A DNA stretch of 64,000 nt from Paraphysomonas bandaiensis (Eukaryota > Protista > Chrysophyceae). The position numbers were made by a program, and so were the translations under genes. The stretch lies in NCBI GenBank assembly GCA_965644295.1, contig CBFFRP010000363.1, forward strand, positions 372,001-436,000. The letters run 5' to 3'. Numbering within the stretch: the stretch's first letter is position 1; each line of letters starts with the position of its first letter. The notes beneath the pieces were generated by a model that made no database searches, had not been told where the DNA came from, and saw only the letters and a list, made by a program, of their open reading frames with translations. Of the stretch, positions 11,796 to 45,130 are shown one piece after another.

Positions 11796-13633
11796 GCTTA
11801 CAAAGCCATCTTCACGGATGGATCCTTCACACGCACACACCTCACCCCTGCTCACCTACTCGGCAACACCCACACACAGCCCAATTCTCACGACGGAGGA
11901 GCTGCAATTGTATGGCTCCCGCCCAAGAACACCTGGGGTCACAGACAAACCAAAATCCTACAACTTACGGCACCACAGTACACAGCGCCTGGCCTCAACG
12001 CATACACCTACGAAACCCTTGCAATGTCAGCAGCACTGACATTCTCCAATGTACTCCACTCTTCCGTGCCAATCTGGACTGACTGCCAGGCGGTACAGAC
12101 GCGGACCAAAGAGGCCCTCTCACACAGACGGCGCGCCCTCGGAACAAAGCCCCAGGGAATATTTTACGAATGCCTCGCCACCACAGCTCTTAAACAGCGC
12201 CCAATACAATGGACGCGTTCGCACCCCGAACGTAGAACACAAGATCAAAGCAACTGGACCTACACTGACCACGGCATTTATATAGCTGACGCCGCCGCCA
12301 GCGGCGACTGGAAGACACTAGACAAAGTGCTCGGAGCCTCCAACTACAGTGTTGTCACAACAGACGCTACGCACATACTGGAAGAATTCTTCACCACGGG
12401 TCAATGGCACTGGCGTAGATACGATACACACCTCCTCACAGACCTCGGTCCTATGCTAGGAGACGTTACAGATCTCCACCACCAGTGGGACCTCCATCAA
12501 TACACCCTCCGACGAGATAGCATGTATGCTGCACAAACGCAACGAGACCCGCAGTATTGGACACGCAGCGGAACAAGGCTCCCACACAAGCTCCATCCCC
12601 TCCGTACCCATAACTCCTCCAAACACTACATCCCCCTCGCAGAGCGTATACGCGAGACGGCATACGTATGGGACAAATCCTTTGCAATGGGTAGAAACCG
12701 AGCCAAAGGAAAATCCGGACACGATCGCACAACGGCTTCCACATGCGCAGACTGTGCACACCCCACAGACAACATGGCACACATGCTTCTCACCTGCACT
12801 CACCCTGACATCATTCACATACGTGAAGATGTCCACCAAGCACACCACAATAAGCTTGACAAACTTCGCACGCGCACGCTCCCCCATCCCTGGTTTTACA
12901 CCGCCATAACCAAACTAGCCAAAGCCGCATGGAACCCAGCCACCCCCAGGTTGAGCGCTACTGGACCGGCCACATTACTGCCACACAAATGGCCGACGCT
13001 TTCGGACGCCACATATCCAGCTCACTGCTCGAACATCAATTCCACGCCCTAGAAAAATCCATCGCCTCTATCCTACTCCCCCTATATGATGGAGGGCTCC
13101 GCATGCTTCGCAATAGGGGACACAGACACCACAACGTAGACACGGCACCGGCGACACCGGTCCCGACACACGCAAAGCCCCGCCAGCCCCAGGATACCCA
13201 CCCGACACCAAAAGTACTCCAGCTACTCCAGGCGACATCCACCCCACGAACTACACTCTCTGCAAGAGCCCAGACCCGACAGAGGCAAGCGCAACCACTC
13301 CGGAAACAACTTCTCCTTACTTGTAGCCGAAACCCCACCTCAACAACCAGCACCATCTCCACCACCGACTTGCACTCTCATATACAACTCGCCTCACCCA
13401 CCCCCCACATAATCCATGGCACAGGTCCGCCAGACACATTGCCCAAAGGTAGACCCCCCGACTAACCTCACTACAAGGGACGGTTGCACCATGGTGCTCG
13501 CAGCGATGCACAAGCAGTCCCGAGACGGTTGCCCGCCACTAGTAGTATATAGCAAATCTAGTTATTAGCTAGTCTATAGACATAAACTAGTTTCTGTACG
13601 CAACCGTACTCATGTAATAATCAGACTTTCATA
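11796..13633 (+). mobile_element. 5'-truncated LINE encoding RNase H and a C-terminal CCHC zinc knuckle
   Basis: RNase H motifs AIFTDGS, NAYTYETLA, IWTDCQ, WTRSH and GIYIADAAA; CADC..H..LTC; one frameshift at ~12935; stop at 13465; perfect 14-bp TSD TAGCCTCTCCGTTC at 11782-11795 and 13634-13647; A/C-rich composition shift. Confidence 0.9.
13477..13521 (+). ncRNA. Conserved 3' structured RNA motif of the LINE, shared with the short retroposons
   Basis: GGGAC-GGTTGCACCATGG-TGCTCGCA-GCGA-TGCACAAGCA-GTCCC; the outer stem covaries in the other copies. Confidence 0.7.
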
Positions 13634-14706
13634 TAGCCTCTCCGTTCAAAAGGTGATGAATAACTACTTGCATTGGCACACCTTTTTTCTCAACAACACA
13701 ACGCAAGAGAATCTCGCGAAAAACTTTGTATGAAATGCGCTTTCCATGTATTACTCCACTGTTGTATTCCGGACATTTCTTCGAGCTCGCTTTCAACCGC
13801 GCTTTCAGAAAACACAGTTCCACATCAACACCAGTGAAGGACTTATCAATAATGCCGCAATCACGGCACATTTTTACAAATTTGGAAAGCTGCATTTCAC
13901 CAGTTCGACAAAACTTATTGAAGAATCTTTCGAGAACAATCTCTGTATCAGAATCCTTGGGTGCTGGCTTGTCAAAATCGTCTTCCTTGATTATATTAGC
14001 ACTACTGCATATCTGACGACATCAGCAAAGTGATCTACAGAGCATTATAGATTAATTGTTTTACCTCTTTGAGTCCACTAACGTATCTAGATGCCATTTT
14101 CATACGAGAACAACTTTGAATTCGACGAGCGGCTTGGTGTTGTTGTGGGGTTCCCACTGACTGGACTGACGCAGTATCATCATCATCGTCAACATTCTCC
14201 GCTTGCACATGCACAACCAAATCCCCTAAGTCAAAATCGTCCTCCTTCTTACGGAGCAACATCGGTACACGTGCTTCAACGCGTGATAGTTTAAATATCA
14301 AGTTGTCGACATGGATTTCTTTCTTCGCAGCGATATCGGGAACTAGTAGGTTTCTGAATGTACTGTAGTTAATATACGCAATTTTCTCTCCTTTGTCAAT
14401 GCTTGCAGTATTTCTAGACTTCTCAAATACACGAACAGCATCAGCAATAGTGAATGTCTTCTTATGCAACAACTTCGCTGCTTTACATAATCGCATAAAT
14501 CCTGGAGAATCCAACTTCCCATCTGAGGCAAATTTGCAGTACAAGTCATATACTTCTTTTTCTTGACCAGAAAATGCAGCTGCAATTAACATTTCTTTGT
14601 CGACAAGTCCCTCTGCATCCTGGAAGGAGATGTACATTTCTTCGCATACTTTGTACAGGTCATCCTTGCTGAGTTTAGACGGCATGCTTGAAGCCCCAGC
14701 ACCCAT
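13629..14706 (-). CDS. Multidomain p25alpha/TPPP-like protein with IQ motif and N-myristoylation signal; C-terminus truncated by the LINE
   Basis: MGAGASS start; two p25alpha-like repeats (LDSPGFMRLCKAAKLL..; MQLSKFVKMCRDCGIID..T..DVELCFLKA); IQ motif AARRIQSCSR; intron 14013-14064 joins the two ORFs in frame. Confidence 0.8.
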
Positions 14707-21000: not shown

Positions 21001-24000
21001 AACAGAGTTGTCCTGGACTATAACACCAAACATCACTGTTCCAATCAATCTTGAGGCGCCAAAAGATTCAAGCTGCGGTGTTCCATTTGGAGTGAACTGG
21101 GTACTCATGTGCTGTCCACTGCAAGACGGTAGCCGAAATCTCTTGTTAGGAAGCACCTCAAGCGATACTCTCCTAGATATGAAAATAATGGGTAGCTTTT
21201 CCATGTCCACTATGGATGTAGTAGAGCAAGATAATAAAATTCGGCGAGACCGTTCTGGAAGTTTTACAGCCCCTTCAGATATTACAGCAGGCCCACCTAT
21301 TGCCAAAGCCAGTGTGAAGTGTATACAAGTGCTCCCTTTCGAGTCAAATATCAAATGGACGCGTTACCTTAATGATGACACATTGGAGGTAGCAACAGAG
21401 TTTTCCGTGGAATTATATACGCGTAGCCACTCCACCGGAATGTGGGAAGGCACTAACACGGCGCATTTCAACGGTAACGACTGTCCTCAACCATTATCTG
21501 ACCGGCTTATTGCGACACCTTCTCCTTGGTCATACAGGGGAATTTCAGGTGTGTCAGACTCTGCCGCAAACGGTTCTCGGTGTGAATATGCTCCCGACTG
21601 GCACCCAGTTTATGTAGCTGTAGATTTGTTTGCGTCATTGGTGGATGAAGATATGTATTGCCGGCATTTCCCACTTACTGGAGAGCATACGAGGCACACA
21701 GTTCCGTCTAGAATACCAGTGGGTTGTGGAAAGGCTATGGACTGGTCGGGGGATTTAAGCCTAAAGCATGCGCTCTATTCAGCTCTGTGTCGTCTTGATT
21801 TGTTGAACAAATCGGTGCAGAGCTCGATGAATAACCCATACTCGTGTTACGCCTCGAAGATGCTTGAAACTCCTACAAATCTGTCACGAGAGACACTTGA
21901 TGCCGTGCTCACTTTTTTGAAGGACACCGCTGCCAAGCTTGTAGTGGGGTCATCCTCCTCTTCAGCAGTGCAGATGGCAATGAAGTTTATGCCAGCCCCT
22001 CTTCAGTCGTTAAAGCCACACGAACTGGTTTTGTTGTGCGTACAAAGCGTGTTTTTGAAAGAAACTATTGCTGAGCCAAGCGACTTTGAGGCTGTTGCGG
22101 CGTGTGACAAACCTGCTATTCAAGCTACCTCTTGTGGTGCGAGCGGTAGTATATCGACATTCATTGGCATGGATGAGTGGGCTGTCCGATCGTTCACTGC
22201 TTACAAATGTCAAACAATACTTGAGACCTTAGGGTCAGAAACGAGTTATAATGAGCATGCTGTAGCCAGTGGGGCGGTTGTACTGAACGCGCTCGTTTCA
22301 GAATCCCAGACCTCCCTCTATGATACTTTTGTCGGGGCAGATGTTGATGCCTTCACATCTCAAATGGAGAGCACAGGTCCCGTGAGGTCGAAGGATTTTC
22401 ATTTTGGGATGCTGTGGTGGGCTCGGAATCAAGTTGGGAAGGATTCCGAGAATGGAAATGCAAACGAATATGATATTCTAAGAGCCCTTACTCAAGTAAT
22501 GACCCCTATGTGGTTGCGCGACATTTCTCCACTCTTTGACCTGATTGAAAAGCTCTCGACGTATCAATTTAAGCACCATCGTGACACAATGAAAATATTT
22601 ATGGAGATGGTTGTTATTGGAAAGTCAAACAAACTCCTGCAGTTGGCCAAGACTGACAGAAATATAATGGGAAAACAGCTCTTAAATTTGTTGAGTATCG
22701 ATTTTACTACTGAAAGAGGGCGAACTGCTGCACACAAAAATGCTTTTGCTTTGCTTCGACTACAGAGATATAAACACGCAGCTGCTGTTTTTCTGTGCAC
22801 GGAGCCACCTATGCTGAAAGAAGCTGTTCGTGTGATAACAAAACACCTCAAAGATCCATTTTTGGCTTTGCTTATCTCAAGATTGGTAGAGCACAGAATG
22901 GGTCCACGAACCCGAACAGGCGGGCTTGTTCTGGGTCCTATTTCAAGAAAAATTATTTCAGAAGACATTCTACCAGCTCTTCATGCCGCCATCAAATCAC
23001 CCGATGGCCATCGCGACGTACCGAGGAGTAAGAAAGATGGTCCATTCTCCCACTGGGGTGCTGATGCAGCTTTGCTGGCTCTGAGTTGTAATCTGTGGCT
23101 TCAAGACAAGTCTGGGTTTCGCGAAACAGTCAGTTTGTGCTCTCAGTGGAACATCTTTAATTGCGCTGCCCAGTGTTCGAATCTTGGGAAAGCTCAACAA
23201 GTGATCGCAGCGTGTGGTTCTGTGCGGTGGCTTACCCGACAGAGGCTGTGTGTGGAAGGTCGAGAAATATTTGCCTATGCCATGGATAGTATGTTTGAGC
23301 AATATGGGGTAATGGATATACGTTATGCTGGTCGAGATATTGTGTCGACAAAGAGTGAGGAGGGATGTTCAGAGAATGCAGTTAACAATCCCTCGTCTTC
23401 TGCCAGTACTTTGAGTGCCTTCATGCGATATTGCGAGGAATCAAGAAAGATGTGGCTGGAAGATGTAAATAAGTTCAATGCGGAGCAGAAGCGTATTGCC
23501 ACTATTGCTAAAAATCGTGTGATTGAATCTAAACAGCAGGCAAGCAGTGCCGAGAATGAAGATGATATAGACGAAATCTCTGCTGCAATGAAAAAGTTAA
23601 ATGCACTGAAGAGTGCATCCGATGAAAGCAATGCCGCAGAGGCTGCTATGAATTTGCAGAAGCAATCAAAAGGATTTAATTTATCGATGGCTTCATCGTC
23701 GACGACGTCGCCGCCGAGTGCATTGGATATGTTCGATATGGCCCCTCCTCCGAAGCCGAAACCGAAGCCAGCAGAACCACCAAGTGCATTGGATATGTTC
23801 GATATGGCCCCTCCTCCGAAGCCGAAACCGAAGCCAGCAGAACCACCAAGTGCATTGGATATGTTCGATATGGCCCCTCCTCCGAAGCCGAAACCGAAGC
23901 CAGCAGAACCACCAAGTGCATTGGATATGTTCGATATGGCCCCTCCTCCGAAGCCGAAACCGAAGCCAGCAGATCCACCAAGTGCATTGGATATGTTCGA

Positions 24001-27000
24001 TATGGCCCCTCCTCCGAAGCCGAAACCGAAGCCAGCAGAACCACCAAGTGCATTGGATATGTTCGATATGGCCCCTCCTCCGAAGCCGAAACCGAAGCCA
24101 GCAGAACCACCAAGTGCATTGGATATGTTCGATATGGCCCCTCCTCCGAAGCCCAAAACTTCGTCTGCACAGCCTGCTAATATGGCAGACACAGCTCCTA
24201 TGCAACGTCCAAAGCCTTCAAATGTAGCGAATTTAGTCGATGGGTCAGATGGCAGCTCCTCGGGTGTAAGAACCCCTGGGGGAGAATCACCGGGACTGCC
24301 TCTGAAGGAGCCTGAAATTCCACAGATATCAGGTAGGTATCAATCTAATGTGACAATAGTGATTAATTGCTTACATTGTTGCGTTTAGATATCGAAAGTC
24401 CTTTAATTGCCAAATTCTTGGATGCAACTGTCTCGGCTGCTGCTGTCAAATGCCCGCCGACTGATGTCAACTACGGGGCTCTTGACATGACGAGAGACTC
24501 TGACATGTGCTCTCTGTTGCTACGCGTTTCAAGTCGTTATGCGGTTGTCAATCGTGCGATGGCGGAGCTTCAGCTAAGTATAGGGCAGCTTCCCACGATG
24601 GGACACCCTTTTTCCATAAGTGGACAGTCGCGTGATCTTTTCAAGGTATATATAATTGTATGATACATATTCTGATTCGTGCGTGTGTATGTAGCTGCAA
24701 GCGCAATTTAAGATATGTACACTTAATATTGGTTTTGATATGTTACGCAGTTGGTATTGGACGATATGCACAAGGGTCTGGGGTCTGATATTGGCCGGCT
24801 TGTTAATTTCCGGAAATGTTTGCGCTCAATATCTATCCGTTACCATGACCTTGTAGATCAGCACTTCAAACATAACTCTCGGTTCAGTGGGGAGATCGTT
24901 GCGCTGCTTCCCAACAGCGAAGATTCTGTAACGTTATCTGGTGCGGCCTCTGCAAATGGTGGAGCTATTTCTTCAGACTGCTGTATGGCCATTTTTCTTC
25001 TGGAGTCTTTGGATTACCAGTGGTCTCCTGACTGTTTGGTACTTCAAGTATTATTAAACTGGGCCGCCGGACGTTATCAAGATGCGCAGAAGGCCGTCAT
25101 AACAGCTGTTGTTTCGCTTTTTGAAGTCTTTCCGTTGTCTAGTATTTCTAGTCAAGGCAATGGTGAGTCCTCCACAGGCTTGCCTACAGCTGCACTCTCT
25201 TACATTATAACAATGATTCGCCAGCTGCAGCTAGTTTTGTCACTTAATTCCGCTCCAACTACTTCCCACCTCTTGATTGCTCACTGTCGACTGGGGCCGG
25301 CTGTGGTAGCCTTACTGGGAGTCGCTATACGACTGGGATTAGCGTTTGCGTCTCTAGAGTACCGGTATGATATAACTCAAAAGATATTAAAGTGTCCCCC
25401 AAAATTCCCATTTGCATCCTTTGGCACGAAGGGTGGACATTCGAACGTCGTACTGGACGAATACGAGGAGTGGCTATCTCAAAACCCGATTGCAAAAAGT
25501 GACCCAGGGCATCTCTACTTCCGTCCGCTATCACGCAACGATGCCATCAATGCGTTGAAAATTCATCCGAAAGGCACATTTCTCATTCGCCCACACGAGT
25601 CTCAGAATGATGTTGTGTTTTTGAGTTTTGTGACTGGCGCTTCTGATGGAGTCAAACATGCGATTATCAGGAACGAAGGGACAGCCGAGCAAGCTAGTTA
25701 TCGTTGTGGTCGAGTTGGCCCTTGTGCTACTATTGACATCACGCTACGTAGTATCTCCAAGATCCTTCCTTCAAGCCTTAGATTTGATCCCGATGTTGTG
25801 GCGGGGGGGCCTTCTAGCTTTAAGTCGAATAAGAGTACTTCAGGTGGAGTGGGAAATACGCGCGATCTAGAAGAGGAAGATGAAGGTGGATTTGCAGCCT
25901 TATCGAAATTCGGAGCATTCTCTGGTGACATTCCTGTGGTTAATGTTGACAGTATACCAGTTGCAAGGGGAGCAGGTGAACTGTCTTGGGATCCTAATGG
26001 AGACATGTGGTGGGAAGTACTAATGGAGGAGGACGAAGATGACCCGGCCTCTAATATTAGCTATGGTGCTGCTATGTCTATGATGTACGGAGCCGAGTCG
26101 GGCGATCGGGAGGTAGATGGGGTACAGCTGAATAGTGTGGCTGAGAGTGGACGAGCAGGTGGTGAGTCATTCCTTGAAGCTATTGCCGCTGTTCGCGATG
26201 CAGAGAGCAGAAGGGGCTCGGACGCCAAGCTGAAGAGCACAGACAGCAAGCCAGACGAATCTCTGGTGAAATCCGATGACGCTCCAGAGGATGATGAGGC
26301 AGATATATCCGAGGAAGTGAAGAAGCGGTTGAATCAACGATTACAGCTCTACGAGCAAAAGGAAATAGAGTCGCACTGGAACATCCCACTTGCGTCGGAT
26401 ATGCTTGGTGGCTTAGTACGAGGGATTACACACATGCTATCCATCAAAACAGTTTACAAACAAATAACCGGCCATATGGATATCTTGAAATCAGCGATAA
26501 GCGATGATAAGGTAGCAGAAAGCAGCTTGCGGCGCTTGGTGTTGACACGTATGCTTGGCAAAATTCCCGTCGAATTAATGCCGTACTCTGTTTCAGATAA
26601 ATCATCTCACTGTAATACCACACCTGCTCTGAGTAAACAAACGTCAGAGAGACTCAAACACAGTGCGAGTTTTAACACCAATGGCAACGACTCGTTATCC
26701 ATTTTGGAACAAAAGGATGATGCCTGCGCTCGCCTGACGGCAGTGGAATCGCTATTTTCTTCGCTTGCCATGTTTGTGTATACTTGCGAACGAGTAGTTA
26801 TGAGCAGCTTATGTCCTGCTCTTCCACTGGACCCAACCTCCTTTATATCAGTAGACATATCTGCCGGAGAGTCACTTATGGAGCAGATTCTGCATGAACG
26901 TTTAGGCGTACCGTTACGCCACGTGAGACTACCGTCTGCTGTAGGCGTGTCTGGCGCAGGTGTGGTCGGTACTAGCCATCCCGCTTTACCCCCCGCTGCT

Positions 27001-29523: not shown

Positions 29524-30030
29524 CCATCAACAAATTCGGACTTGCACTTTTTCGTGGTGTTCTGGGTTCTGGGGGATAAGTGCCGGAGACATTTCTTCGG
29601 GAACTAATGTGAGCCGCATATATAGTCAGCAGATATTGTTCTGCCCACTCATAGCCTAATGCTTTTGTTGTACAAGGGACACTAATATAAGCGTCACTTG
29701 TGTACACGTCTTTGGGCCTTGACAAATTAACAGGCATCCGGAAATGAGCCCACCTCAAGGACATCCGGGGTATTGAACTGCCTGCTGCTGAAGTCAAGCG
29801 TCCGGGCTGTTCACCTCAAGGACTCAGAAATCCTGAAGTTAGCAGATGTCAGGTATATCAACACTCTTCTTACTCGCTGCGTTTGCTTTGAGTAATAGTG
29901 CGAAAGTGGTTGCAACTTGGAGCTTGCGGTGACGCACAAGCAGCTTTCGTGGCGTTAAGTTAAGTATAAGCTACTGAAATTGTTTCGCTACATTAGTTCT
30001 GACTCTTACACGCCTATTGCTAATAATAAT
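29524..30030 (+). mobile_element. Short non-autonomous retroposon, copy 2
   Basis: Same 5' head (HDV-like, 29524-29616), internal repeats, 3' motif (29901-29949) and (TAA)n tail; candidate TSD AGAGGGCGT (29515-29523) / AGAGGGTGT (30031-30039). Confidence 0.8.
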
Positions 30031-30817
30031 AGAGGGTGTAATATAAGCGGAAATATATCAAGAAATTCATGGCGAGACTAATGTACTCAGCTACTTCTTA
30101 CTTAAGTATTAAATATAAGGCACTTTGAATCAATATTCTGCTATTGTAGTGTTAATTAAGCTCCTATTGTACTGTTCTCCTATCAAGCTTATCCATTAAC
30201 TCTCCACTGCATGGAGATCAAGACGTACTCTGACTAAGTTATTGTACTCACCGTTAATATACAACTTTAAATTTTTCATTATTCTATTATAGACTTTGCT
30301 TCATTTACAATCGATATATTCTCTGTGCTTTCGAAATGGGAACTTAGGATTTATATGCAGAAGTACTTTAATATCTATAAAATGTAAAATATATAAAATA
30401 TCCAAGATATCTAGTACAAAGGATGTTATACAAATGGAGCCCTTAAGTCATAGCGACTTTGCAAAGCTTGGTGAAGAATCTACTCTCAATACTTGTAATT
30501 CTAAACGGTTCCCAGATCAGGTTATCTACTTCAAAGTAGCTATAGAACACATAATTACGAAAAAAATCCTGCAATGAGTTCTAATTATTTGCTACAAGAA
30601 ACTATACATCCATCGCGTCAAGCTGCAAAGTACAGCCTTCTAGTAGATGACTCATAAGGACACAGATTTCCACTTGAGTAGAAAATCTGTCAAGCCAGGC
30701 TAATAATTCTAACATAACATATCTACCACGAACACATCAAGATATAAAAAGGAGTAAAAATGACGATTCTGCTCAGGATTATGCATGATCACAGCACAAT
30801 TAACATAACAGATGGCA

Positions 30818-31879: not shown

Positions 31880-32696
31880 GCCACTACAAGGAGTGGTAAT
31901 GATGGTAATGATGGTAGTGAGATATTCTGTATGTGTGAGTGTGTGTTGGTGCTGTGGGGAGGTTAGTTGGATGAGTCAGTGTGATGCTACACATACACGC
32001 AGCAGTGCTACACACACACACATATATACAACACAGCTGTGCAGAGTGCGTATATCCAACTGCAAGTACACAGCATACAGCAGTATCCAACATACGGTAT
32101 AATTTGTATACAGCCAGAATACAGTACCATTTCTCTCAATTGGAAAATACAGAAGCTGTATTTTATAGTATTCCTCTGAAAATACGTCGAATAATTTATG
32201 AGAAAAATTATTTAGCCCGCACCGCAGGTGCGGGATCCCGCACCCTTGTTTTTACACAAAGGCCGCACAGCAAGTGCGCCCATCGAGTGATCCAATCAGC
32301 AGAGTGCATCATAGCATAGTGCATCATATCACATGCATCGAGTATATGTATATAGTAATATGACGAGGCAGCCATATGCAGCAGATACACGTTAATGAGT
32401 GCTTGAATGATAGGTGATAACATGTTGCTACCATCTTATTTCATGAAACTGTGAGATGAGATATGCAGTTACTGGACGAGGTTTATAAGGCTGTATGGAG
32501 AGGAACTGTGAAGGGCTGTATATTATGGTATGAAGTGATATGATATGGATATCAATGATTGAATTCCAGGTGGGAGCATCATGCTCCCATCATCCTATTT
32601 AAAGTGTCAGGTATGCAGAGAGATGAGAAGTGGTACATTTGAAGGAATAGAAGGCTGTATATCATGCATGCACTATGTTGTGTGATGGTATATGAG

Positions 32697-33630
32697 ATGC
32701 TGAATGTTGTCATGGTTTATTATGCTGTTGTAGGCGCAATGACGTTTATACTTACCGGTGCAAGAGGGATGCCTAAGCGACACAAGCGCCCGGCTGCCCC
32801 TGTACCATCTTGCAGTGAATATGTGTCATGTTGTGTAAGGGTATGCAGTATGGCTGTATGTGATAAGAATTCTGAACGGTGTGGAATAATAAAATGCTGA
32901 AGGCTGTGATGGTTTATTATGCTGTTGTAGGCGCAATGACGTTTATACTTACCGGTGCAAGAGGGATGCCTAAGCGACACAAGCGCCCGGCTGCCCCTGT
33001 TCCATCTTGCAGTGAATATGTGTCATGTTGTGTAAGGGTATGCAGTATGGCTGTATGTGATAAGAATTCTGAACGGTGTGGAATAATAAAATGCTGAACG
33101 CTGTGATGGTTGATTATACTGTTGTATGCTCTGTAAATAATGATACGATGTATTCCAATTACTAATGAATCATTAATTATAAGGGTACAGTATAAAAAGT
33201 TGATGGAGTGGTTATAAATGAATACATATAGGCATTCTACAGATTACTAACATCAGACTGTGTCGAATAATAAAATGCTGCACGCTGTAATGGTTGATTA
33301 TACTGTTGTATGCTCTGTAAATAATGATACGATGTATTCCAATTACTAATGAATCATTAATTATAAGGGTACATTATAAAAAGTTGATGGAGTGGTTATA
33401 AATGAATACATATAGGCATTCTACAGATTACTAACATCAGACTGTGTCGAATAATAAAATGCTGAACGCTGTAATGGTTGATTATACTGTTGTATGCTCT
33501 GTAAATAATGATACGATGTATTCCAATTACTAATGAATCATTAATTATAAGGGTACATTATAAAAAGTTGATGGAGTGGTTATAAATGAATACATATATT
33601 GGCATTCTACAGATTACTAACATCAGACTG
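32697..33630. repeat. Composite tandem array: 2 x 197-bp A units + 3 x 184-bp B units sharing a ~50-bp leader
   Basis: Unit starts at 32697, 32894, 33091, 33275 and 33459, each beginning ATGCTG(A/C)AnG(C/T)TGTnATGGTTkATTATrCTGTTGTAkGC. Confidence 0.93.
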
Positions 33631-43614: not shown

Positions 43615-44093
43615 GTTGTGACGATATTAGCAATAGCCGTGTAAGAGTCAGAAGTCAGAACTAATGTAGCAAAACAATTCACTAAGTGCTTAACTATGAT
43701 ATCCTACTATTTAGCACTACGAAAGCTACTTGTGCGTCACCGCAAGCACCAAGTTGCAACCACTTTCGCTGTAGCACTCAAAGCCAACGCAGTAGGCAAG
43801 CAGAATGTTGATATATCTGACAGCTGCTCTCTTCAGGATTTTTGAGTCCTTCAGGTGAACAGCCCGGATGTTTGGCTTCAGCTGATAGCCCAATTCCTCA
43901 GATGCCTTTCCATTCGTCAGAGGCTCAAAGGCGTCTATATACACAAGTGACACTTATTAGTGTGCTTGTACCACGCAAGCATTTGGCTATGAGTGGGCAG
44001 AACAATAGTTCCCGAAGAAAGATCTCCGGTACTTATTATCCAGAACACCACAAAAAGGTGCGAATCAGACTTTGTTGAGGGTCTCCTCTCATG
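43615..44093 (-). mobile_element. Short non-autonomous retroposon, copy 3 (minus strand)
   Basis: Reverse complement begins CCCTCAACAAAGTCTGATTCGCACC; 3' motif at 43720-43768; deletion across P2'. Possible TSD TATATG(T/A)CATA at 43604-43614 / 44094-44104. Confidence 0.78.
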
Positions 44094-44111
44094 TATATGA
44101 CATATAACTCT

Positions 44112-44577
44112 AAACAAAGTCAGAGTCGCACTACGGGGGATAGTGCCGGAGAGATTTCTCCGGAAAACTAACGTGAGTCACTTATATAGTACTGTTATGC
44201 CCACTCATAGCCTAACGATTGTATGGTACAACGGCACTTGTGTAGACGTCTTTGGGTCGTGATGAATAAACAGGCATTCGGGAATGGGTCCACCTCAAGG
44301 CCATCCTGGGTATTGGACTGCCTGCTGAAGTCAAACATCCGGGACTGGGCCCACCTGAAGGCCATCCGGGGTATTGGGCTACCTTCTGAAGTCAAGCACC
44401 CGGGCTATAGCACTAGGGAGCAAAGTGGTTGCAACTTGGTACTTGCGGTGTTACGCACAAGCAGCTTTCGTAGTGTGTTAAGTAGTAGGATATCAGAGTT
44501 AAGTAGTAGCTAGTTAAATTGTTCTGCTACATTAGTTCTGACTCTTACTTATTACGCCTATTCCCAATAATCAGATA
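44112..44577 (+). mobile_element. Short non-autonomous retroposon, copy 4
   Basis: AACAAAGTCAGAGTCGCAC head with P3 deleted, CTAACGTGAG, internal repeats, 3' motif at 44419-44470, tail AATAATCAGA as in the LINE. Confidence 0.78.
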
Positions 44578-45130
44578 TTTACTACATAAAGAGTGATAAG
44601 AGATTCACCTCTGGCCACGAATTAATTCACGTTACCAATGACATGCAATTTATGAGATATCATGCAATGACTTTTAACTTACTAGCTAGTTATATATATG
44701 ACCATCGAAAAAAAGCTGTCTGAGACACCGCGTATCATGATTGATCCAATACATTTAGCAATGATGCTATGTGGTGGATTCTAGGTTACGCTAATCTACA
44801 AACGATTTTATCCGAAACACTGCTAAGCACAACGATCTCGCCGGGCTTCTTTATAGGTGATGTCAATATTGTATTGCAAGTCATAATTTATGGCTCTATA
44901 TATGCAAAAGTAGTTGTTGAGTTAATTTATACCACAGAAGCTAGAAAGTTAGCACTTTATCCGTTAATTTCTAACGGCATTTTTAGCTATCAGTCGTACA
45001 TACAGAAAAGACAAAATATGTCGCATCACAAAAGCTATCGATTTGCCATGCCCACAACTATAAACTATTGAACATCATACAGGTACCTATGCACAACTGC
45101 AGCCATTTCGAGCTAGATTTCAGTTAATAA

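Follow-up and report, generated by a model that had tools for sequence, protein, structure and literature searches.

LINEs of the chrysophyte Paraphysomonas bandaiensis carry behind their stop codon a Y-shaped RNA element of 45-49 bases, a three-way junction whose fold is conserved and covaries among LINE families and across species, and the same element recurs in the tails of short non-coding elements of this genome. On our analysis, the LINE copying enzyme most likely recognizes its template by this Y element. We describe it in a 64,000-nt stretch of P. bandaiensis DNA (the window; the genome comprises 62.6 Mb in 669 contigs), which holds one 5′-truncated copy of a LINE family, LINE-A, and four copies of a SINE-like element. 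Other loci, genomic or metagenomic, are given by L numbers. The features of the window that bear on the element are as follows.

11781-11794: 5′ copy of the LINE-A target-site duplication, read from the sequence, with the 3′ copy at 13634-13647
11795-13635, plus strand: 5′-truncated LINE-A copy, recognized by its ORFs and its similarity to genomic copies
13477-13521, plus strand: Y-shaped 3′ element of LINE-A, 11 nt after the stop codon
13616-13635, plus strand: conserved terminal box, common to LINE-A, LINE-B, the SINEs, L075, L077 and L096
4038-4570 (3′ end approximate), plus strand: SINE-like copy 1, Y element at 4431-4479, outer stem CGGAGGC/GCCTCCG
29524-30033 (3′ end approximate), plus strand: SINE-like copy 2, Y element at 29901-29949, outer stem CGAAAGT/GCTTTCG
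43620-44081 (3′ end approximate), minus strand: SINE-like copy 3, Y element at 43720-43768, head to head with copy 4
44095-44580 (ends approximate), plus strand: SINE-like copy 4, decayed, Y element at 44420-44470

The LINE-A copy in the window has an RNase H-like region together with a Cys/His knuckle at the C-terminus, which is frameshifted. The last base of its stop codon is 13465, and the 3′ UTR that follows measures 170 nt and lacks poly(A). The duplication flanking it measures 12-14 nt, as the terminal TA of the LINE overlaps the first two bases of 13634-13647. Searching the genome with the LINE-A 3′ end, we obtained 414 first-look candidates, 40 of which were scored and proved 98-100% identical. 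Across the scored genomic copies (at least 40), to which the window copy is 99-100% identical, every end falls at 13633-13636 with no A-runs, and the 10 copies that we fetched are 5′-truncated, with lengths from 276 to more than 4,700 nt (to 4766). Poly(A) marine metatranscriptome contigs carry the empty site of the window insertion, with approximately 11751-11780 joined straight to 13634; the locus that LINE-A interrupts is transcribed, and the presence of this empty-site allele in the marine metatranscriptome indicates that the insertion is polymorphic in nature and recent. Together, the 98-100% identity of the copies and the empty-site allele in the sea indicate that the elements are active now. 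A single public-run contig joins 13523 to 13609, representing a LINE-A tail variant that lacks 85 nt of linker. Upstream of the insertion, 8257-10090 contains exons of a gene resembling sarcosine/dimethylglycine dehydrogenase (Pfam DAO, FAO_M, GCV_T and GCV_T_C), and a tRNA gene lies on the minus strand at 6511-6582. The window also has tandem repeats that are unrelated to the Y element, at 11051-11326 (two units of ~140 nt), 23645-24238 (seven to nine units of 66 nt) and 32692-33624 (five units of 184-197 nt).

The first-pass annotation of the window had reported a motif at 13477-13521 with four further copies in the short elements and with outer stems that change in a compensatory manner; all five copies are present at those positions, and the outer stem pairs in every one of them. 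With a covariance model derived from these five copies, they score 64.9-79.6 bits (E 1e-16 to 1e-20), far beyond chance. Scanning the genome with a covariance model yielded about 9,600 rough candidates, of which 150 were scored, all at 72-83 bits, and the 330 kb of sampled loci contained 104 distinct motif copies; all comparisons used natural copies only. The motif resides almost always inside retroelement 3′ ends: the terminal box lies within 260 nt downstream, mostly at 110-140 nt, in 83 of the 104 copies, compared with 3.75% of random stretches. We also confirmed that the terminal AATAATCAGA is common to copy 4 and the LINE and that poly(A) is absent from all copies. A GNRA loop had been described as kept in all but the decayed copy 4. 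The window copies do have GCGA or GTGA there, save copy 4, where the loop has a 2-nt insertion and the outer stem is one base short, but relatives from other species have CCCC, GACC or GCTC; the GNRA loop is, on these sequences, specific to families of the P. bandaiensis genome.

The three-way junction proposed in the first-pass annotation proved real, covarying and common to LINEs and short elements, although its helices are not those originally drawn. In LINE-A, they are arranged as follows, all on the plus strand.

13477-13481 with 13517-13521: helix P1a
13482/13516: 1 × 1 mismatch
13483-13485 with 13513-13515: helix P1b
13486-13489 with 13494-13497: helix P2, loop 13490-13493
13500-13502 with 13507-13509: helix P3, GNRA loop 13503-13506
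13510-13512: junction strand ACA

The closing stem of the fold is long, its outer part being hypervariable yet always paired and followed by the 1 × 1 mismatch and three further pairs; the other two arms are a 4-bp hairpin with a tetraloop and a 3-bp hairpin with a GNRA loop. For LINE-A, this topology is the unconstrained minimum-energy fold. The original drawing had a long third arm with a fixed CA bulge; cross-species comparison favors instead the separate 4-bp hairpin plus the 3-bp GNRA hairpin, with ACA as a junction strand.

Covariation is most apparent in the outer stem, which reads GGGAC/GTCCC in LINE-A, CGGAAGT/GCTTTCG in LINE-B and CCGGAAC/GTTCCGG in LINE-C, and CGGAAGT/GCTTCCG, CGAAAGT/GCTTTCG or CGGAGGC/GCCTCCG in the SINEs. 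It differs between lineages at almost every position, yet pairs in each, and one position in the SINE series goes from G-C through G-U to A-U, the classic route of compensatory change. In a larger set of 44 distinct genomic copies, both bases have changed in six of the seven outer-stem pairs, with none of 500 shuffles reaching the observed values; 92-93% of cells are paired, compared with 88% after shuffling and 30-54% when the partners are slid. We counted three models on these 44 copies, an extended single hairpin and two versions of the three-way junction, and all three score alike, with an interior that is too invariant to separate junction from extended hairpin. Because dead copies decay neutrally, the informative differences are those between lineages, which are few in number.

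The comparison between lineages separates the models. When 10 lineages are aligned with MAFFT without supervision, 90.2% of cells are paired (73.6% shuffled), the covariation score is 0.482 (0.219 shuffled, 0/500 reaching the observed value), and RNAalifold returns the three-way junction. Each lineage's own strands pair at 36/36 positions in P1a, 35/36 in P1b, 47/48 in P2 and 35/36 in P3, whereas strands swapped between lineages pair at a fraction of 0.5-0.7. P2 covaries, being GCAC/GTGC in P. bandaiensis, GCCC/GGGC in L077 and CGCC/GGCG in L075 and L095, and this covariation in other-species relatives rules out the extended hairpin, a parse that would have to use the same bases. P1b covaries as well (G-C to C-G, and U-G to U-A). 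Lineage-specific departures include L077, in which the 1 × 1 mismatch has turned into a pair to give one continuous 9-bp stem, and the GGTC lineage variant (copy 1 and others), in which the last P1b pair is broken. Single-sequence fold energies of the P. bandaiensis copies are ordinary (z -0.6 to -1.7). A resemblance to the SRP Alu domain or to a hammerhead-type junction was considered and rejected, with no Rfam match and loops that are not complementary.

The element extends over several LINE families and beyond the species. In at least three LINE families of the genome, whose proteins are 37-50% identical, the motif lies 9-47 nt past the stop codon, and folds of the same shape are found in marine metagenome contigs encoding LINEs that are 34-42% identical in the RT region.

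L051, LINE-B: ORF ends at 1456, motif at 1504-1552 after a 47-nt spacer, element ends near 1688
L025, LINE-C: ORF ends at 734, motif at 744-792
L075 at 5954-5999, L095 at 3539-3587, L077 at 11959-12005, L076 at 6922-6966 and L096 at 4168-4217: Y folds 9-12 nt after the stop codon, by minimum-energy folding
L092 at 7988-8035: Y fold further downstream of the stop codon, by minimum-energy folding

LINE-B is ~43-50% and LINE-C 37% identical to LINE-A in protein, and LINE-B-like variants carry the motif too. Only about four positions of the ~35-nt motif core differ among LINE-A, LINE-B and LINE-C, making the core much better conserved than the neighboring coding sequence and linker. The metagenome folds are unconstrained minimum-energy structures. 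Using a three-way-junction model built from P. bandaiensis copies alone, we found that the post-stop element of L077, a LINE of another organism with ~41% protein identity, is the top match in 69 kb (E 0.0016), so that this relative keeps the Y element. Eight of the 10 lineages have the base of the fold 9-12 nt past the stop codon. Comparable Y folds occur elsewhere in the same loci at 0.63 per kb, and at this background rate, chance would not be expected to put one so close to the stop codon (a few tens of bases) in most lineages. The two-stem and ten-lineage models leave the post-stop elements of L072, L073, L092, L093 and L096 undetected, and for distant relatives such as L092 and L096, the likeness is one of fold and position only, with helices picked from each sequence. 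L072 (9950-10005) and L073 (10252-10310), relatives at ~40% identity, share with each other another conserved post-stop element whose closing stem differs between the two and which the Y models miss.

A second conserved sequence, the terminal box, marks the point where copies end without poly(A), and it is also recognizable at the ends of L075, L077/L078 and L096. Motif and box are joined by a linker of variable sequence and length. It is shorter in some SINE subfamilies, the contig described above has lost 85 nt of it, and a compact family has a simplified fold only 3 nt away from the terminal box and without an adjacent ORF (L007:566-636, minus strand); these observations suggest that the linker is dispensable. 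The compact tail variant (L007 and L055:1057-1103) has a 9-bp closing stem and a hairpin with a GCAA loop, no second hairpin being clear, and may represent another non-autonomous family.

The SINE-like element is non-coding, ~514 nt long and forms a family of thousands of copies. Its start position is fixed, and young copies are flanked by 13-nt target-site duplications (for example, L054). In the window, copies 3 and 4 (43620-44580) form an inverted pair with heads ~15-30 nt apart. The first-pass annotation had coupled the short elements to the window LINE as a mobilizing pair. The two do share the 3′ module, but the tails of young SINEs (L035, L036, L040 and L047) are collinear with the whole 3′ UTR of the sister family LINE-B, at 117-119 of 137 identical positions, and not with that of LINE-A. 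The LINE-A linker is unlike the young SINE tail; motif and terminal box are shared nonetheless. The last dozen bases of the SINE are slightly closer to the end of LINE-A than to that of LINE-B, and the SINE tail may be a mosaic or may derive from an unsampled LINE-B-like family. For a common head at the 5′ end, a check proposed in the first-pass annotation, the result was negative: by blastn, the LINE-A 5′ end (L071:409) has no similarity to any SINE copy. The SINE head can be drawn by eye in a nested P1-P2-P3-P4 order, as an unscored sketch, and Rfam contains no HDV-like family matching it. A 6-nt complementarity between SINE head and terminal box was set aside, as it looks like chance.

The LINEs that carry the Y element are large. 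An intact homologous LINE-A ORF of 1,669 codons (L068:223-5232), the longest genomic LINE-A copy examined, encodes an APE endonuclease, RVT_1, an RNase H-like region and the knuckle, with Pfam matches to RVT_1 and Exo_endo_phos. Metagenome contig L071, 99.6% identical to LINE-A, reaches further upstream through a SET domain of the lysine methyltransferase type, which precedes the APE endonuclease in the giant LINE ORF (L071:548-5872; also in L072, L073, L077 and L093). Relatives of LINE-A have ORFs of 2,000-2,830 residues and, in some cases, an upstream ORF of ~350 residues. We placed the full-length LINE-A 5′ end at L071:409, where four genomic copies begin exactly, giving an element of ~8.7 kb. 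For the LINE RT, Pfam shows only RVT_1 and Exo_endo_phos, and a PDB search returned only distant matches to R2 and L1. A metagenome search with the C-terminal protein alignment found only relatives at 24-32% identity, with ORFs running past the fetched flank, and a full-text literature search found no paper describing a SET-domain LINE. The ORFs of LINE-A, LINE-B and LINE-C end in KGRPPD or KGRPSD, and those of their subclade, which also includes L075, L077 and L095, end in Pro-Pro/Ser/Ala-Asp-stop. Such endings can be read in the sequence at three places.

Window, 13448-13465: LINE-A ORF end
L051, 1427-1456: LINE-B ORF end
L025, 717-734: LINE-C ORF end

We consider it reasonably probable that the 3′ module has two parts and that the Y element is its structured core, to which the LINE ORF protein binds before priming at the terminal box. 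The host clade would be giant protist LINEs with a SET domain, an APE endonuclease, an RT and an RNase H-like region. The first part of the module would be the Y RNA right behind the stop codon and the second the short terminal box, usually 110-140 nt on. The LINE ORF protein would bind the Y element, reading the outer stem as shape only and the junction and the two hairpins by sequence, and target-primed reverse transcription would start at the terminal box, which would explain the 5′-truncated copies, the target-site duplications and the missing poly(A). The ~514-nt non-coding element, bearing the same module, would be copied in trans.

Alternatively, the Y element could serve the LINE's own mRNA by pausing or organizing the terminating ribosome or through RNA stability, export or localization, with the SINEs carrying it as a passenger of a borrowed tail. 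In 8 of the 10 lineages, the fold base keeps a near-constant distance of 9-12 nt past the stop codon, which speaks for such a role, as do the Pro-Pro/Ser/Ala-Asp endings of the subclade ORFs; this placement suggests a link with termination. However, non-coding SINE subfamilies keep the fold intact with their own outer stems still pairing, the LINE-B spacer measures 47 nt, and the compact family puts the fold beside the terminal box, away from any ORF. We regard a role in the mRNA as unlikely to be the main explanation, and it need not exclude RT binding. A more speculative version joins the two functions, as the near-constant 9-12-nt spacing from Pro-Pro/Ser-Asp-stop suggests a connection with translation termination: the Y element might be a co-translational capture device. 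With the fold lodged at the entry channel of a ribosome that is slow to terminate, the newly made ORF protein would load onto the RNA that encoded it (cis-preference); priming would follow once the distant box had been recruited, and the two-part signal would be an ancient hallmark of the SET-domain LINE clade of marine protists. We hold this version to be somewhat less likely again.

The remaining alternatives carry far less weight. If the resemblance reflected mere shared descent, or a recent exchange of 3′ modules between families, the fold itself would be without function; template switching can move tails among retroelements, and the interior varies so little within the genome that most interior pairs are uninformative. 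Against this stand an outer stem that has diverged at almost every position and always pairs, a core whose conservation greatly exceeds that of the neighboring coding sequence and linker, and the retention of the Y element by the other-organism relative at ~41% protein identity, all of which make a functionless fold very unlikely. From the small three-way junction with its conserved core, in elements whose 5′ head had been proposed to be a ribozyme, one might imagine an RNA that forms the transcript's 3′ end by self-cleavage or processing. Searching Rfam over the whole window at gathering thresholds, we found no match except one tRNA; over 3950-4600, which includes a motif copy and the SINE head, matches at E up to 5 were at chance level with no ribozyme family among them, and a scan of L071 gave nothing. 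Moreover, the Y element usually lies 110-140 nt upstream of the copy end; cleavage at the motif would remove the sequence beyond it, yet copies always keep that sequence. We therefore give a processing role almost no credence. The reading of the Y element as the protein-bound core of a template signal remains the one that we prefer.

That reading places the P. bandaiensis LINEs among known strategies of template choice. The ORF2 proteins of stringent LINEs bind a cognate 3′ stem-loop common to their partner SINEs, with recognition described as "general stem, specific loop" (PMC4176376, PMC1636434). Several features expected of a stringent pair are found here, namely a 3′ tail shared by LINE and SINE, a conserved structure within that tail, and duplications with 5′ truncation and no poly(A). 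As in the L2-clade pairs (eel UnaL2/UnaSINE1, zebrafish ZfL2-1 and ZfL2-2), there is no dependence on poly(A), and the combination of free outer-stem sequence with a fixed core in P. bandaiensis fits stem-general, loop-specific recognition. The systems differ in that the L2-clade structure is a single stem-loop, whereas here it is a three-way junction that abuts the stop codon, usually 110-140 nt from the 3′ end; its distance from the priming site exceeds 100 nt and is greater than in the L2 type. The L2-clade elements end in short tandem repeats, in contrast to the unique conserved terminal box of this group, and the present LINE belongs to an uncharacterized protist clade with a SET domain, its binding being a prediction.

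Two other systems invite comparison. In trypanosomatids, L1Tc/NARTc and ingi/RIME share a Pr77 head with an HDV-like ribozyme (PMC3185411, PMC3383444). The P. bandaiensis elements are similar in pairing an autonomous RNase H LINE with an abundant short non-coding partner whose head has been proposed to be HDV-like, but the trypanosome pair shares the 5′ head, whereas here the 3′ module is shared and the LINE-A head is unlike that of the SINE. Because the LINE-A and SINE heads are not shared, a Pr77-style shared-head system does not appear to apply, at least for LINE-A. The protein-binding RNA of the R2 3′ UTR is likewise a multi-helix 3′ UTR structure that defines the template of target-primed reverse transcription without poly(A), and the solved structures closest to the P. 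bandaiensis LINE RT in the PDB search are those of the R2 and L1 ORF proteins. R2, however, is site-specific and uses a restriction-like endonuclease, whereas these LINEs are of the APE type with dispersed insertions, and R2 has no similarity to the Y element in sequence or model.

Template choice by LINE RTs is understood for few animal elements only. What we describe is probably a known strategy, that of the stringent LINE/SINE pair, in a new shape and a new lineage; the novelty lies in the fold and its covariation, its occurrence in several families and species, its distance from the stop codon and the terminal box. At ~45 nt, the Y element is compact; its helices are clear, its junction is nearly invariant and compensatory variants of it exist in nature, so that it offers a small and defined substrate for binding and structural work. 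Because its distance from the stop codon is fixed, the idea of co-translational template capture can be tested directly. It also provides an annotation marker by which these retroelements can be recognized in protist genomes and metagenomes.
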